In this document: positions 3,796 through 24,999 of the stretch, one piece after another
How the letters are laid out: the number at the start of each line of letters is the position of its first letter
Numbering within the stretch: position 1 is the first letter of the stretch
Assembly: GCF_031769215.1 (NCBI RefSeq)
Contig: NW_026781951.1
Location: forward strand, 496,001-560,000
Direction of reading: 5' to 3'
Length of the DNA stretch: 64,000 nucleotides
Source of the DNA: Ylistrum balloti
Taxonomy: Eukaryota
Program-made: the position numbers and the translations under genes
The notes under the pieces: generated by a model
Told to the model about the DNA's origin: nothing
The model's database searches: none
The model's input: the letters and a program-made list of their open reading frames with translations, nothing else

Positions 3796-5981
3796 TATAC
3801 AGCGACTTTCACCTCCTATCCTTGTAATTACGGAGTAAGATATAATGTCCAAGGGATGACCCAGACTGACGGCGTCATCCGTCAGACATTTCAGTTGTTT
3901 ACTTGGTTTCCTTGTAAACCTCGACAGAACAGATAAGTCGTATCAAACACAAGCCTGTTACTGATTTGACAAGTACTGCGATTTTTAGTCTCAAATCAAA
4001 ATGTGTGTCACAGTCCTTATTGTACACTTTTACCTTAAGAACTAAACGTGATAATGTATCGTATGTATAATCGATTTAAAAAAAACACATTCCACCAACA
4101 TAGAATGATAATACGGCTTGTAATACACTGAATACTACTGAGTACTGCCGAACATAAGAATCGGAAGAGTGAAATGCGCATGTCAGAAATATATAAATAA
4201 AGTTGCAAAGCAGGTAAACTTTTTACGGAAAAGCATAGAAACTTCTTACAAATGACAAGTTATTTTTCAATAAGTAATCAGTTTATGTTTATTCTAAAAT
4301 AATTGCATCGATTGTTTAAAACATTTTTGAAACTTTTATTAGACACAATTTATTGATGTCAAGATGATTGTGAAGCATGCATACTGGCTTGGTTAGTGTA
4401 GAGCGCGGACAGAACTCGATTTCAATATTTGGTTACATAAGCTTGTTGTAATTTATCGTTTAGTAATAAAGTCGACTAAAACATTTCTGTAAAACATAAA
4501 TCACACTTTTGCTACATATATGAAGTAAATACCGTTGTTTTAATGACGGTCAGATCAACCTATTGTTGCCATGGAAAGGTGTGTTGTCAATGACGTTTCT
4601 GCCGCTTTAGTTGTACCTTTTTAATGGCTTGGAAGTGAATTTAGAGTTATTTTATGTACTACGTCATTATACGAGTGAAATATGTAGGTAGTAACTTTAC
4701 ATTTTAATTTCGGCTAGCAGTATCGGTAACGGGATACCGTTTATTGGATATAGTAACGCCTCCATCCTGCTCCTCTCTCCTTATATGGAAATATGAAATC
4801 AATAGGAGTTATTTCCCTTGCATCAACCAAGCTATATATTCAATCGTGGATAGATTAACCCGTTGATTAGGACACATAAATCAAATTCTGTCAAATGATT
4901 CTTTTTAGTAGAAGTGTTTCATGGTTAAGGTTTTGTGCAGTTTTTTAAAAGTTACTTCAAGATATTTGGATCTAATCTTGTAATAGTGAAATATACTTGA
5001 AACAAATGTATACTGTACCTTTTCTTTGTCTTTCACATCTGTTTATTGGCTTGATAATGTTTCGTTTTCTACTTTTTGTCGTACTCTTGATTTTTCCTAT
5101 AAAATGGTAGGAAGATACAAACTCAAGGAAAGTGTTTATTTTTATCCTATCCTTTTAACCAGTACGGTACAACTAAAGACATAATCTTCACGTGTTGCCA
5201 CACTGTTATGGTGTTGCTAGAATGTTTTCAGAAATTCCATCTTTTGTAAAATTACATTGTAGCTCTTTTTCATTACAAGTTCTGAAATGTTTCTTTCTTA
5301 TAAGTAAAAATAATACAAAATCTGTTTCTAGTCAATCAAATATGCCAGTAATCTATTCTTTAATTGTTTATTTAATTGTTTGTTTATTTGTTTATTTATT
5401 GCTCTTTTGTGTTTTCTACTTATGCTCTTTTCGTTATTCCAATACTGATCTAATATTACAACCCACGTTTATGTTTGGTGAGATAAGTAAGAGAAATGGC
5501 GTTAGAAATCTGTGAACCTACCATCAACATCGCCAGTATATTGTTGTGATGCACAATGAATAATCACGATCGCTACCTACCGTATGACGACCTGTTTGCT
5601 ATATGATCCCAGTCCCACATGGTCAACACTGGAAAGGTCAGCGATCACTTAAGTGTATCCTTGATTGTCAATGCTCGCTCATGTTGATCGTAAATGTATA
5701 ATACGAAGAACCGCTGATAATGTAACTTTACATAAACAGATCTAAATTACAACTCTATCAGCTGATTAGAACAAAGCTTTTGTTATTGTAATCAGACAAT
5801 CAATTCAATGGAACTCACCTCGATACATATGTATTTAAACCATACACGATGGTCACTTGTAAACCAATAGATGCGGCTGTCCTTTCACAATGCTTGCCAA
5901 TACAAGATTATCTGTTGTTTTTGATGCTTATGGTAGCGGACACACAGTTTTGGACTAACGTAGTGATTTAATTGTAACACA

Positions 5982-8900
5982 ATGTTGAGAAGAACGTATC
6001 TACTGAGCTTCATACTTGTTATAACGATGTCACTGTGCTTTCACGTTTATTTTTCAAATCAAAAGGATAGCGGCAAAATAGAATTCTTGGGGAAAGGAAT
6101 GGATCGGTATGTATGAAATAAGCATTAGAAAGTCAACAACACATCACTAACAATACGCCCGAATCACAGCACACATCGCTTTCATTCTGATTAGTGCTTT
6201 TAACATTACCGATATCACCTGTTGGTGTTGTTGTCTGTCTAATGATTTTAACATTACCGATATCACCTGTTGGTGTTGTTGTCTGTCTGATGATTTTAAC
6301 ATTACCGATATCACCTGTTGGTGTTGTTGTCTGTCTCCTGTTGGTGTTGTTGTCTGTCTGATGATTTTAACATTACCGATATCACCTGTTGGTGTTGTTG
6401 TCTGTCTGATGATTTTAACATTACCGATATCACCTGTTGGTGTTGTTGTCTGTCTGATGATTTTAACATTACCGATATCACCTGTTGGTGTTGTTGTCTG
6501 TCTGATGATTTTAACATTACCGATATCACCTGTTGGTGTTGTTGTCTGTCTGATGATTTTAACATTACCGATATCACCTGTTGGTGTTGTTGTCTGTCTG
6601 ATGATTTTAACATTACCGATATCACCTGTTGGTGTTGTTGTCTGTCTGATGATTTTAACATTACCGATATCACCTGTTGGTGTTGTTGTCTGTCTGATGA
6701 TTTTAACATTACCGATATCACCTGTTGGTGTTGTTGTCTGTCTGATGATTTTAACATTACCGATATCACCTGTTGGTGTTGTTGTCTGTCTGATGATTTT
6801 AACATTACCGATATCACCTGTTGGTGTTGTTGTCTGTCTGATGATTTTAACATTACCGATATCACCTGTTGGTGTTGTTGTCTGTCTGATGATTTTAACA
6901 TTACCGATATCACCTGTTGGTGTCGTTGTCTGTCTGATGATTTTAACATTACCGATATCACCTGTTGGTGTTGTTGTCTGTCTGATGATTTTAACATTAC
7001 CGATATCACCTGTTGGTGTTGTTGTCTGTCTGATGATTTTAACATTACCGATATCACCTGTTGGTGTTGTTGTCTGTCTGATGATTTTAACATTACCGAT
7101 ATCACCTGTTGGTGTTGTTGTCTGTCTGATGATTTTAACATTACCGATATCACCTGTTGGTGTTGTTGTCTGTCTGATGATTTTAACATTACCGATATCA
7201 CCTGTTGGTGTTGTTGTCTGTCTGATGATTTTAACATTACCGATATCACCTGTTGGTGTTGTTGTCTGTCTGATGATTTTAACATTCACCCGATGATTAC
7301 CGATATCACCTGTTGGTGTTGTTGTCTGTCTGATGATTTTAACATTACCGATATCACCCCTTGGTGTTGTTGTCTGTCTGATGATTTTAACATTACCGAT
7401 ATCACCCCTTGGTGTTGTTGTCTGTCTGATGATTTTAACATTACCGATATCACCCCTTGGTGTTGTTGTCTGTCTGAAGATTTTAACATTACCGATATCA
7501 CCCTGTCTGATGGTGTGTTGTTGTCTGTCTGATGATTTTAACATTACCGATATCACCTGTTGGTGTTGTTGTCTGTCTGATGATTTTAACATTACCGATA
7601 TCACCCCTTGGTGTTGTTGTCTGTCTGATGATTTTAACATTACCGATATCACCTGTTGGTGTTGTTGTCTGTCTGATGATTTTAACATTACCGATATCAC
7701 CCCTTGGTGTTGTTGTCTGTCTGATGATTTTAACATTACCGATATCACCTGTTGGTGTTGTTGTCTGTCTGATGATTTTAACATTACCGATATCACCCCT
7801 TGGTGTTGTTGTCTGTCTGATGATTTTAACATTACCGATATCACCTGTTGGTGTTGCTCTGTCTGATGATTTTAACATTACCGATATCACCTGTTGGTGT
7901 TGTTGTCTGTCTGATGATTTTAACATTACCGATATCACCCCTTGGTGTTGTTGTCTGTCTGATGATTTTAACATTACCGATATCACCTGTTGGTGTTGTT
8001 GTCTGTCTGATGATTTTAACATTACCGATATCACCTGTTGGTGTTGTTGTCTGTCTGATGATTTTAACATTACCGATATCACCCCTTGGTGTTGTTGTCT
8101 GTCTGATGATTTTAACATTACCGATATCACCTGTTGGTGTTGTTGTCTGTCTGATGATTTTAACATTACCGATATCACCTGTTGGTGTTGTTGTCTGTCT
8201 GATGATTTTAACATTACCGATATCACCCCTTGGTGTTGTTGTCTGTCTGATGATTTTAACATTACCGATATCACCTGTTGGTGTTGTTGTCTGTCTGATG
8301 ATTTTAACATTACCGATATCACCCGTTGGTGTTGTTGTCTGTCTGATGATTTTAACATTACCGATATCACCCCTTGGTGTTGTTGTCTGTCTGATGATTT
8401 TAACATTACCGATATCACCCCTTGGTGTTGTTGTCTGTCTGATGATTTTAACATTACCGATATCACCTGTTGGTGTTGTTGTCTGTCTGATGATTTTAAC
8501 ATTACCGATATCACCTGTTGGTGTTGTTGTCTGTCTGATGATTTTAACATTACCGATATCACCTGTTGGTGTTGTTGTCTGTCTGATGATTTTAACATTA
8601 CCGATATCACCCCTTGGTGTTGTTGCTCTGTCTGATGATTTTAACATTACCGATATCACCCCTTGGTGTTGTCGCAATATGAAGGACGAACTGGTGGTCC
8701 ATTGATGTTTATTGATCAGATTTTACTTATTTAGGTATATGCATTTACAAATTATATATTACATAAAAGATGGAACAAACAGATGTGTCTCCTCATTGTT
8801 TTAATAGTTACGTCGCGCTCTGCTGAATCGAACTTAAATCCAAAGATATAAAGACAATGAAGTGCTATACAAAAGACCTGCACTAATTGATAAGAATATT

Positions 8901-11454
8901 GGCATGCATGTCTAAATCAGGGTTAGAGGAATGTGAACATATACACATGTACTTGGCGTTATTCAAAATAATCTTTAGTATTTTGGGGAAACGCAAACTT
9001 GGTTTATTACAGAACAAACTCACCCTCGTCAATATTCCGACATTACTAACAATATTTTCTCTTTATTTTCTAATTTTTCCCACCATGTGTGAATCGATGT
9101 CCTCTACAGACAATATAGTATATCTAGGTCGCTCATTAGACTTACGCACTTTGAGATATTTATGAGAATGCCTTTGAAAATCGTGTCTATCTGTTTCTGA
9201 TGACGCAGCCAATCACAAAACTTCTGATAAATATCGATGCAAAGTACGATTAAATTCTATTATGGTTTGGTTCTATGAGACACCTATTATTTGCATCTCG
9301 TGCACTAAGTACGTCAGAGCTAGTCATTTGTCTGATGAAGGTGATCGAAACGTCGCATTAAACCTTCTACTGGTTGTGTTATAATATAAAGTTGACAGTG
9401 AAGTCATCGAAACATCACATTCTAATCTTCTACTGGTTGTGTTATCAGAACTATAATGTGACCGTGTAGTCATCTAAACGTCACATTCTTATCTTTTACT
9501 GGTTGTTTTATAAGAACTATAAGGTGACCGTGTAGCCATCGAAACGTCACATTCTAATCTTCTACTGGTTGTGTTATGAGATGAAAATGACGTGTAGTCA
9601 TCGAAACGTCACATTTTAATCTTATACTGGTTGTGTTATGAGATGAAAATGACGTGTAGTCATCGAAACGTCACACTCTAATCTTCTACTGGTTGTGTCA
9701 TAAGATGAAGGTGACCGTGTAGTCATCGAAACGTCACACTCTAATCTTCTACTGGTTGTGTTATAAGATGAAGGTGACCTTGTAGTCATCGAAACGTCAC
9801 ACTCTTATCTTCTACTGGTTGTGTTATAAGATGAAGGTGATCGTGTAGTCATCGAAACGTCACACTCTTATCTTCTACTGGTTGTGTTATAAGATGAAGG
9901 TGATCGTGTAGTCATCGAAACGTCACACTCTAATCTTCTACTGATTGTGTTATGAGACGAAGGTGACCGTGTAGTCATCGACGCGTCACATTAAACCTTC
10001 TACTGGTTGTGTTATGAGAACTTCTATTCTATATTATTCACAGGTTTCTTAGTTATCCTTTGAGGACTACAAGTCATGTGGAAAGGCTAAGGAAACAGGT
10101 AAAGAAGAATCATCACATACTACTTATAGGCTATCTGGGAGGTGGAACATCACTTCTGGGAGATATTCTAGGAACCAGAAATACTAGTTTCTATTTGTAT
10201 GAACCACTTCACTACATGGCACGATTTGGATACTTCAAGCCTGGGTACCAATGCAGCATGAAGACGGGCAATTGTTGGTAAGTCAATTGGTAGTTCTTAG
10301 GTATGTGGTACATATAGGTATCTAGATTGAATCAAGCATTCTACATAAAAATGTTCTGTTGAAATTGTAGAACATATACAATGCATACATCCCTTATAAT
10401 TTAACACAGTGATATCACTCACTTTGGTTTTATTACATATATGCTGTATTATAGAATCAAATAGCTGCAATAAATATAAGTACAAATATTATTAACCGGC
10501 AAATTCTGAAGACCAACAGGTCACATGACTGGTGGCATTAAGTTCAGCAATTATATTTTGATTTAACGTTTATTATTCTTCCTTTTTTAAATTTGGAATC
10601 GTATTTAAATGGAAAAAGGAATCCAAAATTATCATTATTATTAAATGTTTTTACTTTTTCACAGGAAGAACAATCAGACCAGCGACCAAGCTATAAGGAC
10701 CGTACAGGCAATATTCAACTGTGATTACGATCATTACAATCATACAGTGCAATGGTGGCAGGTCCGATTATCTGGTGCAGCTGGAAAAGTCAACGATCGA
10801 AACTGGAATATTTCCTCTTCTAGATGTAACAGAACTTGCTTAATGAAGTATCTGAAATTATGTTCACATTATGATTCAATAGTTAGCAAAATACCAAGAG
10901 TAAGTGTCAGCTTAGCTTCACAACTTTTGAATAAGTTTTCGAACCTGAATATAATCCATCTCCTGAGAGATCCAAGAGCTATAATGAACTCAAGGAACAA
11001 ATATGACTGGACCCCTGTCCCAGGTGGCGCTATAGCGTTATGTAATAAAATGGCAGATGATTTTCTTGAATCAGTAAAATTGAAAAGGGTTTATCCCGGA
11101 CGATTTTACACTGTGTTTTACGAGGATATGGTGACGGATCCATTCGAAACATTTAAATATATTTATACATTTGCGGGGTATAACTTCAATGCAGATGAAC
11201 AACTCCGTATTAATAAGAAAACGCGAAATTCCCAGAACATTGCATGGGGTTGGAGGAACATTATCGACCATAATGTCCTAAAAGAAACAAATAAAGCATG
11301 CAGTCACTTATATTCGCTTCTGGGATACCCGCAAGTTAGAAATATAGAGGAAATAAGAAACAGGAGTTTCCCGCTCCGATTAAAAGTAAAAGGGGCCAGA
11401 CACTTTAATAACATCGCCGATATATATCGGTCGATGTCAAACAGACGTCAATAG
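5982..11454 (+). CDS. Carbohydrate sulfotransferase-like paralogue A (exons 5982-6106, 10044-10277, 10665-11454; 382 aa; type II membrane)
   Basis: Signal-anchor exon MLRRTYLLSFILVITMSLCFHVYF...MDR|gtatgt. Exon 2 has LLIGYLGGGTSLLGDILG...FYLYEPL. Exon 3 has HLLRDPRAIMNSR (3'-PB) and VFYEDMV. Both introns are phase 2, GT-AG; total 1149 nt in frame. Confidence 0.9.
6198..8672. repeat. 48-bp minisatellite (CTGTCTGATGATTTTAACATTACCGATATCACCTGTTGGTGTTGTTGT), ~51 copies, in CHST-A intron 1
   Basis: Exact 48-nt period (5 units per 240 nt). Two variants, CACCTGTTGG and CACCCCTTGG. It accounts for all the long repetitive ORFs in 6147-8705. Confidence 0.97.
9328..9357 (+). ncRNA. Minimal Penelope-type hammerhead ribozyme-like motif (stem II collapsed in this first unit)
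   Basis: TTGT-CTGATGA-A-GGTGATC-GAAAC-GTC-GCA: full CUGAUGA and GAAA core, palindromic ACGT stem III, GUC triplet, short stem I. Confidence 0.55.
9334..10016 (+). repeat. 63-bp minisatellite, 11 units, derived from the 3' part of a hammerhead-like motif; ends ~25 nt before the CHST-A exon-2 acceptor
   Basis: Unit GATGAAGGTGACCGTGTAGTCATCGAAACGTCACACTCTAATCTTCTACTGGTTGTGTTATAA. GAAACGTC recurs at 9541, 9603, 9666, 9728, 9791, 9854 and 9917. Confidence 0.92.
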
Positions 11455-13157: not shown

Positions 13158-16100
13158 ATGATGTCTCCGCGACTGTTTCTTCTGGCTGGTATTCTGTTCA
13201 CAGCATTGTTATTATCCTATATGATATATCGCTCTGATTTCCTCGACAATCCCAGATCTAAAGGGGTTGTTCGGTAAGTACTCGATCTGTTGATCATTTT
13301 TTTGTTTAGGAAAATAACAGTTTATTTGTTTGTTAAACAAAGTGATTTTTTCATTTAGATTGCCATTTTCTTGTTATTTGGATATTGCTTTCAATGTTAT
13401 AATCAACTGAAGATTATTACTGAAGTACATCAAGTGTAAATAAAACATCTCAGCAATTGATCACGAGTCATATAAATCCTTCTGATACGTGCTTCCATAT
13501 TTCGAGCGATGCATACCCTAAGTCATACATAATTGTACTTTAATGAAAGACGGCACATCGAAAATTGAAGAATGCCGAAAAATCACAGATGACATGTTTC
13601 TATAATGGTTGAAGATGGTATTACATACAGGAAATTAGATGTCAGCTATTCTGTTACTTCTGGAACAATGCAGCGTCTGAATCAAACGTATTCACGAGTC
13701 TCAGGTTTAGTAATCTTTCAAATTCTACAGTCAGAGATGACAAACGTTTGTGTAGAAATGCACGACGAACCCCATTTACCACCGACGATCAGAGGAGAGT
13801 GGGATGCCAATATTCGGATTAGCCGGCGTACCCTGAACAAACGACGTTTAAGCAATAGGTAACTACGCTCTCACCGACCAGTAAAACGTCCTCTGTTGAC
13901 TGAAAGCCACCAAGACTCCAATCGGCACGTGATCTCCGGAAACGGAATATTAGGTCTGGGTGAAGAGTCTTACAGACGGAAAATCCTTTTTTGGAGACTA
14001 AGAAATACGGCATACCATTAGAATGACATTTTGGACACAACAGCCTTTAGTGTTGGCGATATTGCTGTTTGGTTATAGTTTTCTCTTAATTTAAGTTTCG
14101 CTTTCAAGTCCTTGATAGAACTTTATAAAGGCAGCAGTACCATGATCAGATCCTTCAGCCTTTAGTTATTTATTATGTCAATGCCAATCCATTGGCAGAT
14201 CGGCTTATCCTAATGGATGGCAATGCCAAACCATACAATGCACAAATACTACATCAAACAAGAAGTGATAGAAACGTTTTTCTTCCATCGCCTGTAGAGT
14301 CAGCACATTAAACCAGCAGGTGTGAAATTATCTCGGAAAAAAGTAAATGCCCGGGATCCAAATAGTAAGCAATATGAGAATTACCCGATTCGCTGAATTA
14401 AGAGCGGCAGTAGCTTCCTCAAACCAAGCTTCGGTTCTGGTCAATGGTATGAGAATAGGGACATAAGAAATGTAACAGAAGTGTGGCCGCCTATATCCGA
14501 TATTGACACTTTCATGTCCAATATTTCTCATTGATTAAGCAATAGGTTTTGATGATTTGATGACGTATCTGAAAATAAGAGATGGTTTTGGTCAAACTAT
14601 TTTCTTGACTTTGAAAATGCATTTTGAGCACATCGTTTTAAAATGATACAGCACTTACGATTCTGTTTTATTATTTTTTCCATCGACTATTTATTTCCGT
14701 TTACTGCCTAAACGTCCTATATATCCTGTTGAATTTTCTTAAATACGTCGAGTAAAATTAAGCCCAGTCCAAAATATGGTTGGTCAAGTGTTTGGCCAAG
14801 CGTATATGTATACATGATTATTAATGCTGCGCTTAATATTTGCTGTGAATTAGTACAATAATTGTACGTAAGTTTTTCCGTAATCCTATTTTGATTGATT
14901 CGTCACTGAAAAAAGAATTTTCATTGCAAGTGTAGTATTCAACAATACTATATACGTAAAAACAATATCAACATTGTTATAAATACCCGCTAGGGTTTCA
15001 GATGGCAACAAGTGAACTAGTTTCGGGCGGCCAAGATTATGGGATGGAGACAAGAAAAAGTAAACTGTCCTCTTTGGGAAACACAAATATATATATAGGT
15101 AGCCTCTTTCTCATTTCGTCGCTACTTTTTACTAATAAATGACATTTTGTTTACAGAGTAGTTGCTGATCCCCAATATCGCCCGTTCCCTTTGTCCAACA
15201 ATGGAAAGAAACGAAAGAATTCTCACGACATACTACTGATTGGCTATTTAGGAGGCGGAACCTCTTTTACAGGAGATATTCTTGGGAAACGGAATGATAG
15301 CTTCTATTTGTATGAACCATTGTATTCCTTATATAGGTTTGGATACTTCAAGCCAGACTATAGCTGCAGTATGAAAAAAGAAAGCTGCAGGTTAGTAGAA
15401 GAGCATTGTATAAGGGAAAAAGCAATGTTGTGTCAAATGCAAATCTGTTTTGTTTTGAAATAAGTAAATCGATATGAACTAAGTATAGAACTTCCCAGAA
15501 TGTCTCATTTACGATGTTGTAACCACTTATGATAATAAAAATCCACAGACGGTATGACTACCATTACACTATTAATCTGAATGACAACCAAACATGAAAA
15601 ATTCAGCAATGATTATTATGGCAATATCTTATGATTGTTTTTTAGGTTAAGATATCCATTCCCATCTGAATTTTCTTTCTAATGCTAATCCGCAGTGTAA
15701 AGTTTAATTATTCTGCACTTCAACATTAAAAATACATTATTTCCATTACTTAAAAAATCTTTGATAACGGCTTGCTATCTACATTGTAATTGCCTTTTTT
15801 CGTTTTCCTCCCCAGGCTTATTAGTTCCTGTTACCTCTAGTAATCCTAACATTATACAAAATATTTCCTATTCCAAAAAACTAAACAAACAAAAACAACT
15901 TTTTGTTTAGATGTTATAATCTAAAGTGTTGCTGTCCGCCAGAAGTAATATTTTCAGCCCCGGACACGTTAGTTAGATCAAATATCAGCATGGAGAAGGA
16001 AACAATAATGTACATCTCAATCGACGAATGCCATCCTAAACTACTTATTATGTCCCAATATATGGTATTTTAACAACGTTTTATCATTTATATGTAATTC

Positions 16101-22038: not shown

Positions 22039-24999
22039 ATGCTACGGCGAACATATATAATTTGTTTGTTACTTGTCACGGCATTTTCACTATGTCTCAA
22101 TGTGTATATTTCAATTCACAAGGACAATATCAGCAATGAAAGGTTGTTGGAGAAACGATTAGATCGGTACGTATTTAGTTTTAATTCTTTTCGACTTACT
22201 GCTGTATACTTATTTCATCATTTAACTGTTTATTCGTCTTTATATTTTTACTTTTCTTTTTATTTTCCCCATTTTGTTTCTTTTTTATTCTTCTTTTTCT
22301 GTAATAATTGGAATTCTCTAGATAAAACAAAAACAACGAAAATGACTTCCTGACAATATCGTAACATGTATTTAATAATAACCCTTTCCAAAACGCGTAA
22401 TATAAGGAGATTTCACTTACCTCGGCATGTGTCTGTAAGGTAGGAAAATAATGGTAGGAAATTATGTTTGTATGTCGCTTTGTTTCTTTGAACAATTGTA
22501 TTACATTGTGCTTAAAAACTTTGACAATTCCTTTTAACGGTTCAATGAAGTATTTATTTCTTTTACATCGCAATGTTTACTGCAATAGATTGATTCTGTA
22601 TCCTAATTATTTCACACGTGCTATATAACTGGAGCAAATGATGGAAAGCGATACAACGACCGTGGCGTTCTGGCGACTGTGGTCTTCATCAGTCAATCGT
22701 ATGTTCACGTTTAATATTAACAGAGGGAAAAACAACTTAAAACAGGGTTGGAGCCAACAGAGAACAATGCGATATATCATGCCCATAGTTGTATAGATGG
22801 TGGCGCGGCTCAGAATATACACATGTACCTGTTCTTCTGAAATTAATGTATGTATATAAATCCCCCCGTCTAGAATTTTACAACCGCCATAGGTTTCAAA
22901 ACTTAAGCCCTTAGCATCACTGACGAGCCCTGGAAGAACGAAGCAGATGTATGATGTAGCATCACTGACGAGTCCTAGAAGAATGAAGCGTTGTACGATG
23001 TAACATCACTGACGAGCCCTCGAAGAACGAAGCAGTTGTATGATGTAACATGACTGACGAGCCCTAGAAGAACGAAGCAGTTGTATGATGTAACATCACT
23101 GACGAGTCCTAGAAGAATGAAGCAGTTGTACGATGTAACATCACTGACAAGCCCTAGAAGAATGAAGCAGTTGTATGATGTAGCATCACTGACGAGTCCT
23201 AGAAGAATGAAGCGTTGTACGATGTAACATCACTGACAAGCCCTAGAAGAATGAAGCAGTTGTACGATGTAACATCACTGACAAGCCCTAGAAGAATGAA
23301 GCAGTTGTATGATGTAACATCACTGACGAGTCCTAGAAGAATGAAGCAGTTCTATGATGCTGTTCGATTCATTGTTCGCTTTAATGTACCTAGGACTAAA
23401 TTTGTGTTAAGAATTGGTTTTCACGTTTTGTCTTTTGCATAACTTTAGAAAATAGTATTGTCTTATTTACACTTTATTTACAGGTCGTATGGCGACAATT
23501 CGCATCAAAACGGCTCCTTAACGAAGCACGATATGCAAGTAAAAAAGTCACGTGACTTACTACTGGTGGGTTATTTGGGAGGTGGAACAACGTTTATGGG
23601 AGATATTCTTGGTTCAAGGAATAATAGCTTCTACTTGTATGAACCACTTTACTCTATGGCGCAGTTTGGATATTTCAAGCCTGGACACCAGTGCAGTATG
23701 ACGGGGGGATGCAGGTTCGTTAATAACAGCTTATATGAAAATAATAATGATATCACATGTAACCGATCTTCAAAGCTATATCTTTTAAGGTAAAAAGTTA
23801 ATACGAAATATATCCTTCCAGGAATTAATCAACATTGAAAATCAGAACTTCATTTCTTAGCTTATGTCAGAAATTCCATTTCCAGCAGCAGTTACGTTTA
23901 GATATTTAAAGTTAATTAATCATTTTTTTTAATTATGAAACATTCCTTTAGCTCATGTCTTCGTTACGTGCTGCAGTGTTTTCCATATCACATATCCTTC
24001 AGTCATACAATGATTGTGTACTTCCCTACTCAGTTTCCATTAGCGATATATTTCTCCTTCATAATGCCTGTCATAGTCTCAAATTAACACGTGAAACAGA
24101 AACTGCGAAACATGCACAGGTTACGGAATCATCCGAGCATGCTTGTGGTTACAAGTTCACTTTCGTTTATTTTCAGTTCGATAATACCAAGCTAGGTAAA
24201 CACAGACGTGACTGTACTGTGTTTTAACTACGAGAAATGAACAAATTTCTTTTCGCTTCTTTTTTCATCTTACAGGAAGAATGCTCAGATTGATGACCAC
24301 GTTCTAAAAATAGTTCATGCTATATTCAGCTGTGAGTATGACCATTTCAACCACAATATCACCTGGTGGCAAACTGCTGCCTCTAAAATATCCAATGATC
24401 AAAGATGGGAACAGTCTTTTCTGGGTTGTAATGTAAATTGTTCGAGAAAGTATTTGAGTTTATGTTCACAACATGGTTCAATTGTTAGCAAAATGCCGAG
24501 GATAAGCATCGGCTTAGCCTCAAAACTTTTGAACAGGTTACCGAACTTGAAAATAGTTCATCTTTTGAGAGATCCTAGAGCTATCATGAACTCGAGGAAA
24601 AAATATGACTGGACCCCTGTCCCAAGTGGTGCCATATCATTATGTTACAAAATGTTCGATGATGTTCTTGAAGCGGAAAAAGTGAAAACAGCTTATCCCA
24701 CCAGGCTGTATACCGTATATTACGAAGATATGGTCATGGAACCTCTTGAAACATTTGAGAAAATCTACAACTTTACGGGCTATAATTTCGATGCAAATGA
24801 AAAAACTCGAATCCTTGATAAGATGCAAAATTCTACGAGAATAGCAAAGGCTTGGAGAAACGGTATAGACGATAAAATCTTGAGGGAAACCAACAAAGCG
24901 TGCACTCGATTATATCCGCGACTAGGATACCCACAAATTTCGAATTTATTAGAAATCAAAAACATGAGCATTCCACTAAGAAATAAAGTAATCGGGTAA
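22039..24999 (+). CDS. Carbohydrate sulfotransferase-like paralogue C (exons 22039-22166, 23484-23714, 24276-24999; 360 aa)
   Basis: MLRRTYIICLLLVTAFSLCLNVYISI...LDR|gtacgt; LLVGYLGGGTTFMGDILG...FYLYEPL; HLLRDPRAIMNSR. Phase-2 introns; 1083 nt in frame. Confidence 0.9.
22914..23360 (+). repeat. 45-bp minisatellite, 10 units, each a hammerhead-ribozyme-like monomer; ends ~120 nt before the CHST-C exon-2 acceptor
   Basis: Unit ACATCA-CTGACGA-GCCCTAGAAGAAC-GAAGC-AGTT-GTA-TGATGT-A. ACATCA and TGATGT are exact reverse complements flanking the core. Confidence 0.9.

Follow-up and report, generated by a model that had tools for sequence, protein, structure and literature searches.

A 63-bp repeat array in Ylistrum balloti as the probable remnant of a Penelope-like element whose hammerhead motif was cut by duplication

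The stretch of DNA analyzed here, hereafter the window, comprises 64,000 nucleotides of the Ylistrum balloti genome (contig NW_026781951.1, positions 496,001 to 560,000, forward strand) and contains an array of units of about 63 bp just upstream of a sulfotransferase exon. The array is best explained as a relic: positions 9294-10029 of the window are very probably the dead, 5'-truncated 3' untranslated end of a Penelope-like element (PLE), in which a 63-bp duplication that cut through the core of a hammerhead motif produced the repeats. Intact members of the family would carry one complete minimal type-I hammerhead, without a helix III loop, about 110 nt before their terminus, and the parent RNA motif would read TGU-CUGAUGA-A-GGUGAC-loop-GUCAUC-GAAAC-GUC-ACA. 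In the ancestor of many copies, the 63-bp segment from GAUGA, which lies within the core, to UUAUAA would have been duplicated head to tail at a GA microhomology. As the duplication starts within the core, every later unit has AA in place of C3 and U4. Array-bearing 3' ends would then have been dispersed to numerous loci in 5'-truncated form, as target-primed reverse transcription predicts, while arrays may also have expanded and contracted locally. We infer both this order of events and the template switching or slippage that would have given rise to the duplication. The existence and architecture of the family, its link to a reading frame for a reverse transcriptase and a GIY-YIG endonuclease, the duplication junction, and the neutral decay of the core are shown by the sequences themselves.

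The array belongs to a dispersed family. When the 648.5-Mb genome was searched with three canonical units, arrays with 89-97% identity were found on at least 32 other contigs. The complete motif, CTGATGAAGGTGAC-N6-GTCATCGAAACGTC (spelled out, TGT-CTGATGA-A-GGTGAC-N6-GTCATC-GAAAC-GTC-ACA), occurs exactly at no fewer than 93 places, against none for a reversed-pattern control. Thirty loci around such exact occurrences were taken for a comparison of their flanks. Many of these copies contain a single unit, with the complete motif placed between a constant left flank (...ACTACGTACGTCAGTGCTAGTACGCTCCACACTGGTCATTTGT) and ACACTCTAATCTTCTACTGGTTGTGTTATAA-GAACTTCTATTC, and some copies have a further 36 bp, TATTGACATTACCAACCTGAAGAAAATGTTCCAAAA, at the 3' end. 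The same two family flanks were recovered at loose contig ends of an independent public run.

The way in which these copies end points to a retroelement. Homology upstream of the motif fades stepwise, with 28, 21, 16, 12, 8, and 2 of the 29 other loci retaining it per 50-bp step, while homology downstream of the motif stops sharply at about 110-150 bp; this is the profile of 5'-truncated retro-copies. Inverted, 5'-truncated partner copies abut the 5' side in a number of loci (L003, L011, L015, L047, L048, L052, L054, L060, L062, and L068), and contigs C676 and C553 show a head-to-head arrangement of parts derived from an open reading frame (ORF) and from the 3' untranslated region (UTR). Insertions of PLEs are characterized by 5' truncation, an inverted partner, a tail of 30-40 bp that not every end has, and a hammerhead close to the 3' terminus (Craig et al., PMC8557442). 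The family shows a constant 3' end, heavy 5' truncation, inverted partners, and the 36-bp tail in some copies only.

The longest copies also retain parts of the coding region. In these, the left flank runs upstream into a decayed reading frame containing words of a GIY-YIG endonuclease (L041, L044, L055, and L056), such as CVYNIRW.NC...ATGET.R....RLTEH at L044:1102-1254 and SALAYH....H.IDW....IVDRE....RRLVKEAIWIRR at L041:1128-1286; in L041, the motif lies about 215 nt past the end of the decayed GIY-YIG ORF. The ESM Atlas returned only weak leads for the ORF pieces (0.88-0.89), with one cluster containing GIY-YIG. In an exhaustive phmmer search, a 53-aa ORF piece matched 406 proteins at E<=0.001. 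One of these, P0018 (674 aa), contains a match to the reverse transcriptase (RT) family RVT_1 (E 3e-5), followed by a C-terminal GIY-YIG domain just above the Pfam cut-off, the domain order of canonical PLEs with an endonuclease. In four shorter matches, a GIY-YIG domain scores at or near the Pfam cut-off. The genome was then queried for collinearity, both with P0018 and with the ORF end and 3' UTR of L047. On contig C149, an ORF remnant corresponding to amino acids 403-669 of P0018 (199150-199926) adjoins and is collinear with the UTR (199062-199277), and on contig C44, a remnant corresponding to amino acids 352-616 (2692310-2693077) likewise adjoins and is collinear with the UTR (2692067-2692278), with both parts on the minus strand in each case. 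The complete CTGATGA...GAAACGTC copies thus adjoin PLE remnants with RT and GIY-YIG, in agreement with the link to Penelope-like sequence proposed in an earlier note on this DNA. As the ORF remnants are riddled with stop codons and only 35-36% identical to P0018, the lineage looks old. The word GGTCGATTCC in the left flank had suggested the head of a tRNA-derived short interspersed element, a candidate that was rejected: ARAGORN found none in eight loci, and the flank is PLE 3' UTR.

Minimal hammerhead ribozymes (min-HHRs), which reside in the pseudo-long-terminal-repeats or 3' ends of metazoan PLEs, lack a helix III loop, are presumed to act as dimers, and have a long helix II with one unpaired 5' base (PMC4209133). 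Their helix I is short, and they mostly occur as solitary copies from truncated elements (PMC4209133; reviewed in PMC6155905). The motif of the present family shares these features: GAA-ACGU-C forms a 4-nt palindrome with a zero-length loop, a bulged A is present, and the predicted helix II, GGUGAC/GUCAUC, is 6 bp long, including one G-U pair. Helix I (UGU/ACA) could pair over 3 bp at most, compared with 2 bp in a variant from D. virilis and 4-5 bp in most families. The motif is also found where a min-HHR is expected, at the 3' end of an element family with remnants of an RT and GIY-YIG ORF. Structure and context together therefore support its assignment to the min-HHR type, as the earlier note had suggested. 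A relaxed descriptor of our own, which recovers the complete motif at L070:1498-1537, matches by chance at a rate of 0.005 per shuffled 64-kb window on both strands, corresponding to an expectation of about 50 genome-wide, and of about 1e-5 within one given 330-nt UTR.

General hammerhead models did not detect the family. The Rfam models (RF00163, RF00008; clan CL00010), which the earlier note had proposed for checking the array, gave no match at E<=10 on window positions 8500-11000, nor on ten loci including exact complete motifs. As a positive control, the same models gave scores of up to 41.6 bits for an unrelated 45-bp family at other places in the genome. The Rfam hammerhead models expect a helix III, which min-HHRs do not have.

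Comparison of single-unit copies with arrays locates the duplication. The sequence is ...CATTTGT-CTGATGAAGG...GTTATAA-GAACTTCTATTC in single-unit copies and ...GTTATAA/GATGAAGG... in arrays, and the duplicated segment is GATGAAGG...GTTATAA. The junction falls at the GA common to CT-GA-TGA and ATAA-GA-AC, inside the catalytic core, where the earlier note had placed it from the window alone. Twenty independent loci supplied 365 exact 63-bp units, of which 358 begin with AA and none with CT, in line with the claim that only the first unit keeps CU. Other duplications within the family have different phases. The array at L057:1039-1534 (contig C129, near 341380) has fourteen 33-bp units with nothing but the 5' half (CTGATGAAGGTGAC...GTAGTATTACATTTGT); one complete motif and a normal 3' end come next, so that this array is the mirror image of that in the window. 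At L064:1379-1950 (contig C176), units of 61-62 bp, each with a complete CTGATGA...GAAACGTC, are interspersed with 63-bp units, and 61-62-bp arrays with complete motifs are also present at C331:884891-885107 and C702:564103-564260. As the 4 phases observed across the family (33, 61, 63, and 66 bp) share one hairpin, it appears to be especially prone to slippage or template switching. No account of a 63-bp, core-cut minisatellite that spread with PLE 3' ends was found in the literature, and the exact words of the motif gave only chance matches in the searchable literature.

Within the window, Tandem Repeats Finder reported a period of 63 bp at 9344-10019, with 10.7 copies, 89% matches, and a score of 955, which agrees with the 63-bp array that the earlier note had described at 9328-10016. 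Splitting the array at the conserved word CTACTGGTTGTGTTAT yielded eleven units (Table 1) of a 62-66-bp repeat, of which adjacent ones resemble each other most, and each of which contains CTAAT followed by a pyrimidine-rich stretch. The 66-bp variant unit of U3 and U4 is also present in L010. CTGATGA followed by GAAACGTC within 30 nt occurs once in the window (9332-9354), compared with none in 100 shuffles. GTCATCGAAACGTCACA is kept in exactly six units, with 3' strands at 9597, 9659, 9722, 9785, 9848, and 9911. Two further observations of the earlier note were borne out by this unit-by-unit reading: the first unit alone reads TGT-CTGATGA-A-GGTGAT, and six downstream units have an intact GTC site, their conserved 3' halves (GTCATC-GAAAC-GTC-ACA) falling within 9597-9917 in the present reading. 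What had been overlooked is that unit lengths vary, and that U1 lacks 11 bp present in all other family members, such that loop 2 and the 3' strand of helix II are deleted. As U1 has no helix II 3' strand, and units 2-11 have no C3 and U4, the window contains no complete core in cis; consistently, a descriptor scan of both strands of the window found no complete hammerhead motif.

Table 1. Units of the array, boundaries of the insert, and the adjoining exon. Positions are those of the window.
Feature	Position	Strand	Description
Left candidate target-site duplication TATTATT	9285-9291	+	7 bp, 2 nt outside the insert; direct reading
Penelope-like 3' UTR remnant (CATCTCGTGCACTAAGTACGTCAGAGCTAGTCATT)	9294-9328	+	Immediately 5' of the hammerhead; the insert is truncated here on its 5' side
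U1	9329-9382	+	Keeps TGT (helix I strand), CTGATGA (core), the bulged A, and GGTGAT (5' strand of helix II), and continues without interruption into CGAAAC-GTC-GCA
U2	9383-9445	+	63 bp, diverged (GAAACATC); without CTGATGA core
U3-U4	9446-9577	+	66-bp variants with a different junction (AAGAACTATAAGGTGAC); without CTGATGA core
U5-U6	9578-9701	+	62-bp variants (GAGATGAAAATGAC)
U7-U10	9702-9953	+	Canonical 63 bp: AAGATGA-A-GGTGA(C/T)-C(G/T)TGTA-GTCATC-GAAAC-GTC-ACAC
U5-U10	9578-9953	+	3' half GTCATC-GAAAC-GTC-ACA intact; AAGATGA or GAGATGA replaces CTGATGA (C3, U4 lost)
U11	9954-10015	+	GAAAC changed to GACGC
Family 3' terminus GAGAACTTCTATTC	10016-10029	+	Without the optional 36-bp tail
Right candidate target-site duplication TATTATT	10032-10038	+	2 nt outside the insert; direct reading
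Sulfotransferase exon	10044-10277	+	Same strand as the insert; from translation and alignment to sister exons; start tentative

The arrays evolve in a neutral-like manner, with no constraint protecting the core. Across the 365 units, the least conserved positions are the CpG of C11.1 and the catalytic G12, with 75% and 72% consensus. The exact 3' half is kept in 111 of the units, and all six helix II pairs in 268. As duplications of other phases (33, 61, and 66 bp) occurred as well, duplication appears to have been indifferent to its effect on the ribozyme.

Several points weigh against this account. Even for the parent motif, activity as a ribozyme is unproven: helix I spans 3 bp, and in the minimum-free-energy fold of the monomer, UGAUG pairs with CGUCA, which would bury the core. 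That the locus itself has no ribozyme activity is something we infer. On the side of the carrier, Pfam was silent on two stop-free 50-aa ORF pieces, the RVT_1 match of P0018 lies under the curated Pfam cut-off, and the inverted ends can also be read as the terminal inverted repeats of a DNA transposon.

The last of these points leads to a different carrier. The array could be the central tandem repeat of a nonautonomous DNA transposon, of the Helentron/HINE type or a miniature inverted-repeat transposable element, with a likeness to hammerheads that is coincidental. The inverted ends of many copies resemble terminal inverted repeats, and Crassostrea gigas offers well-documented examples of short, dispersed, satellite-like arrays borne on Helentron derivatives (PMC7492417). 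We nevertheless regard this origin as improbable. The left flank is collinear with remnants of an RT and GIY-YIG ORF, upstream coverage fades gradually, and in inverted copies the outer ends are fixed and the inner junction varies, as expected of a partner that is truncated at its 5' end. Among the traits of PLEs is also the optional 36-bp tail, and a chance match of the descriptor in a 330-nt UTR is expected at a rate of only about 1e-5. HINEs carry a left sub-terminal repeat, a complementary repeat, and a microsatellite on one side, and a right sub-terminal repeat and a palindrome on the other, and insert at TT without target duplication. None of these substructures was seen, including the microsatellite and the 3' palindrome, in the flanks that were read, although that search was not exhaustive. 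The collinearity with the GIY-YIG ORF and the 5'-truncation profile led us to reject such a carrier in favor of a PLE.

Local alignments of the window copy to L041, L055, and L070 begin at 9291-9295, and the remnant upstream of U1 has a 15-bp deletion relative to other copies. The tail-less 3' end is shared with L016, L018, and L041, while the 36-bp tail is present in L011, L058, and L070. The TATTATT pair flanking the insert is a candidate target-site duplication, but may also have arisen by chance in AT-rich DNA. The locus is also present in contigs of an independent public run.

Downstream of the insert, the sulfotransferase reading frame is open from 10018, with a candidate acceptor (cacag/G) at 10043/10044 and a donor (G/gtaagt) at 10277/10278. 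When aligned to the sister exons (23536-23701 and 15214-15375), the exon shows homology to paralogues over 10096-10262, and a possible first exon encoding a membrane anchor lies near 5967-6113. Most likely, then, the insert is intronic and in sense orientation, within the presumed first intron of the sulfotransferase gene. The retroelement fragment (10016-10044 region) stops 14 nt short of the candidate 3' splice site. If that acceptor is used, its branch point and pyrimidine tract would fall within the last repeat unit.

This arrangement raises the question of whether the host gene has co-opted the insert, either as the source of a branch point and a pyrimidine tract for the acceptor that follows it, or as an intronic regulatory element or source of small RNAs. 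The short distance between insert and candidate acceptor would fit such a role, as would the CTAAT and pyrimidine-rich stretch in every unit, and another hammerhead-bearing array lies upstream of the homologous exon in a sister gene. Still, co-option is improbable: the start of the exon is tentative, with homology to paralogues beginning only at 10096, arrays of the same family are present at many unrelated loci, and the array evolves like neutral DNA.

Least probable of all is the mechanism put forward in the earlier note, in which repeats are looped out so that the 5' half in unit 1 can pair with any of the six 3' halves, and the CHST-A pre-mRNA is cleaved at alternative GUC sites. One strand, in sense orientation, does supply every nucleotide of the core at one place or another, the parent motif is credible as a min-HHR, and discontinuous hammerheads with very long insertions are known from Clec2 3' UTRs (PMC6155905). 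However, a partition-function fold of 9320-9965 assigned in-register pairing of the unit-1 GGUGAU with a downstream G(U/C)CAUC a summed probability of only about 1.6%, of which the six intact sites account for about 0.5%, with 1e-2 or less for each site. Stable pairing of the distant halves is thus not predicted; in the minimum-free-energy fold, the unit-1 strand instead pairs locally (9340-9345 with 9357-9364). A long-range helix II would include two G-U pairs, helix I would have just 3 bp, and, with helix III absent, a second molecule would be required as well. Even complete, dimeric min-HHRs cleave only weakly in vitro (PMC4209133). In addition, Rfam gave no match at E<=10, decay of the family arrays is fastest at G12, and the mirror-image array and other duplication phases elsewhere point to accident rather than design. 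The proposed pairing into an active core, and with it cleavage of the host transcript, is therefore not supported. It is just as hard to credit that the unit-1 half and the six 3' halves would assemble with the aid of proteins, or co-transcriptionally, into a discontinuous hammerhead that cuts the host intron.

Set against known systems, the family most closely resembles the PLE min-HHRs (Cervera and De la Pena 2014, PMC4209133; PMC6155905). Both have a CUGAUGA...GAAA...GUC core, an unpaired base on the 5' side of helix II, a long helix II (6 bp here), a palindromic ACGU implying dimers, and a short helix I; both are located near a PLE 3' end, mostly as solitary copies from truncated elements. 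The window copy differs in that no unit is complete, U1 having lost helix II, and the others C3 and U4. Head-to-tail repeats of hammerheads in retroelements are also known from non-LTR (long terminal repeat) retrozymes and tandem min-HHR PLEs (Cervera and De la Pena 2020, PMC7229834; Li et al. 2026, 10.64898/2026.07.22.740005). Non-LTR retrozymes are likewise related to PLE pseudo-LTRs, and the minority of family arrays with 61-62-bp units (L064, C331, and C702) is, like them, complete in each unit. Yet retrozyme units are 150-450 bp long, each with a complete, active type-I hammerhead yielding circular RNA, whereas the dominant unit here is 63 bp and cut inside the core, which precludes self-cleavage unit by unit. 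With window units of 62-66 bp, and none of the 365 family units beginning with CT, the arrays do not qualify as retrozymes.

The nearest precedent for a split ribozyme would be the Clec2 3' UTR hammerhead (Martick et al. 2008, reviewed in PMC6155905), an analogy based on parts that lie hundreds of nucleotides apart in a host transcript. In Clec2, however, the insertion interrupts helix I of a complete type-III motif that makes tertiary contacts and is conserved across mammals, while the gap here would fall in loop 2 of a minimal motif, with helix III absent, local pairings competing, and no sign of conservation. Finally, transposon-borne arrays of other bivalves (Cg_HINE, PMC7492417; oyster satellitomes, PMC8268682 and PMC11136912) similarly consist of about 5 to more than 40 units at many sites with constant flanks. 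Their carrier is a Helentron, and their monomer is 140-180 bp, unlike the PLE 3' end and 63-bp unit described here. The 66-bp satellite CgiSat24 of C. gigas was considered as well, but its published consensus is unrelated in sequence. PLE min-HHRs, tandem min-HHR copies, non-LTR retrozymes, and bivalve transposon-borne arrays have thus all been described, and the present family is a further case.

Other tandem repeats were found as well. Much of the presumed intron that holds the insert is taken up by a 2.5-kb array (6150-8672) with a 48-bp unit (CATTACCGATATCACCCCTTGGTGTTGTTGTCTGTCTGATGATTTTAA) and 97% matches in the part scanned, in which the word CTGATGA is present and its GAAA partner absent. 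Upstream of the homologous exon of a sister sulfotransferase lies a 45-bp array (22914-23360), with sub-threshold matches of 20-21 bits to Hammerhead_1 and Hammerhead_3 (22959-23352). Elsewhere, tandem runs of this 45-bp family are followed by a conserved, element-like 3' tail (L034, L036, and L037), with a best match of 41.6 bits; it is probably the 3' end of a second family of retroelements that carry a hammerhead. An unrelated tandem repeat with long repetitive open frames (MKGYCLTAVKGYC...) is present upstream of the truncated Penelope copy in L041 (L041:5-612).

For the host gene, the effect of the insertion is likely small, its presence within an intron, near an acceptor site, being tolerated. 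If the split ribozyme were real after all, it would provide the sulfotransferase pre-mRNA with alternative self-cleavage sites born from a retroelement. If the motif is active as a dimer, the complete-motif arrays of L064, C331, and C702 would be the relevant copies. The locus itself offers a sequence-level account of how a minisatellite may be born from the ribozyme region of a PLE and later spread by retrotransposition. Such an account may be of use in the annotation of invertebrate repeats and in searches for ribozymes, in which arrays with a partial core would be false leads.

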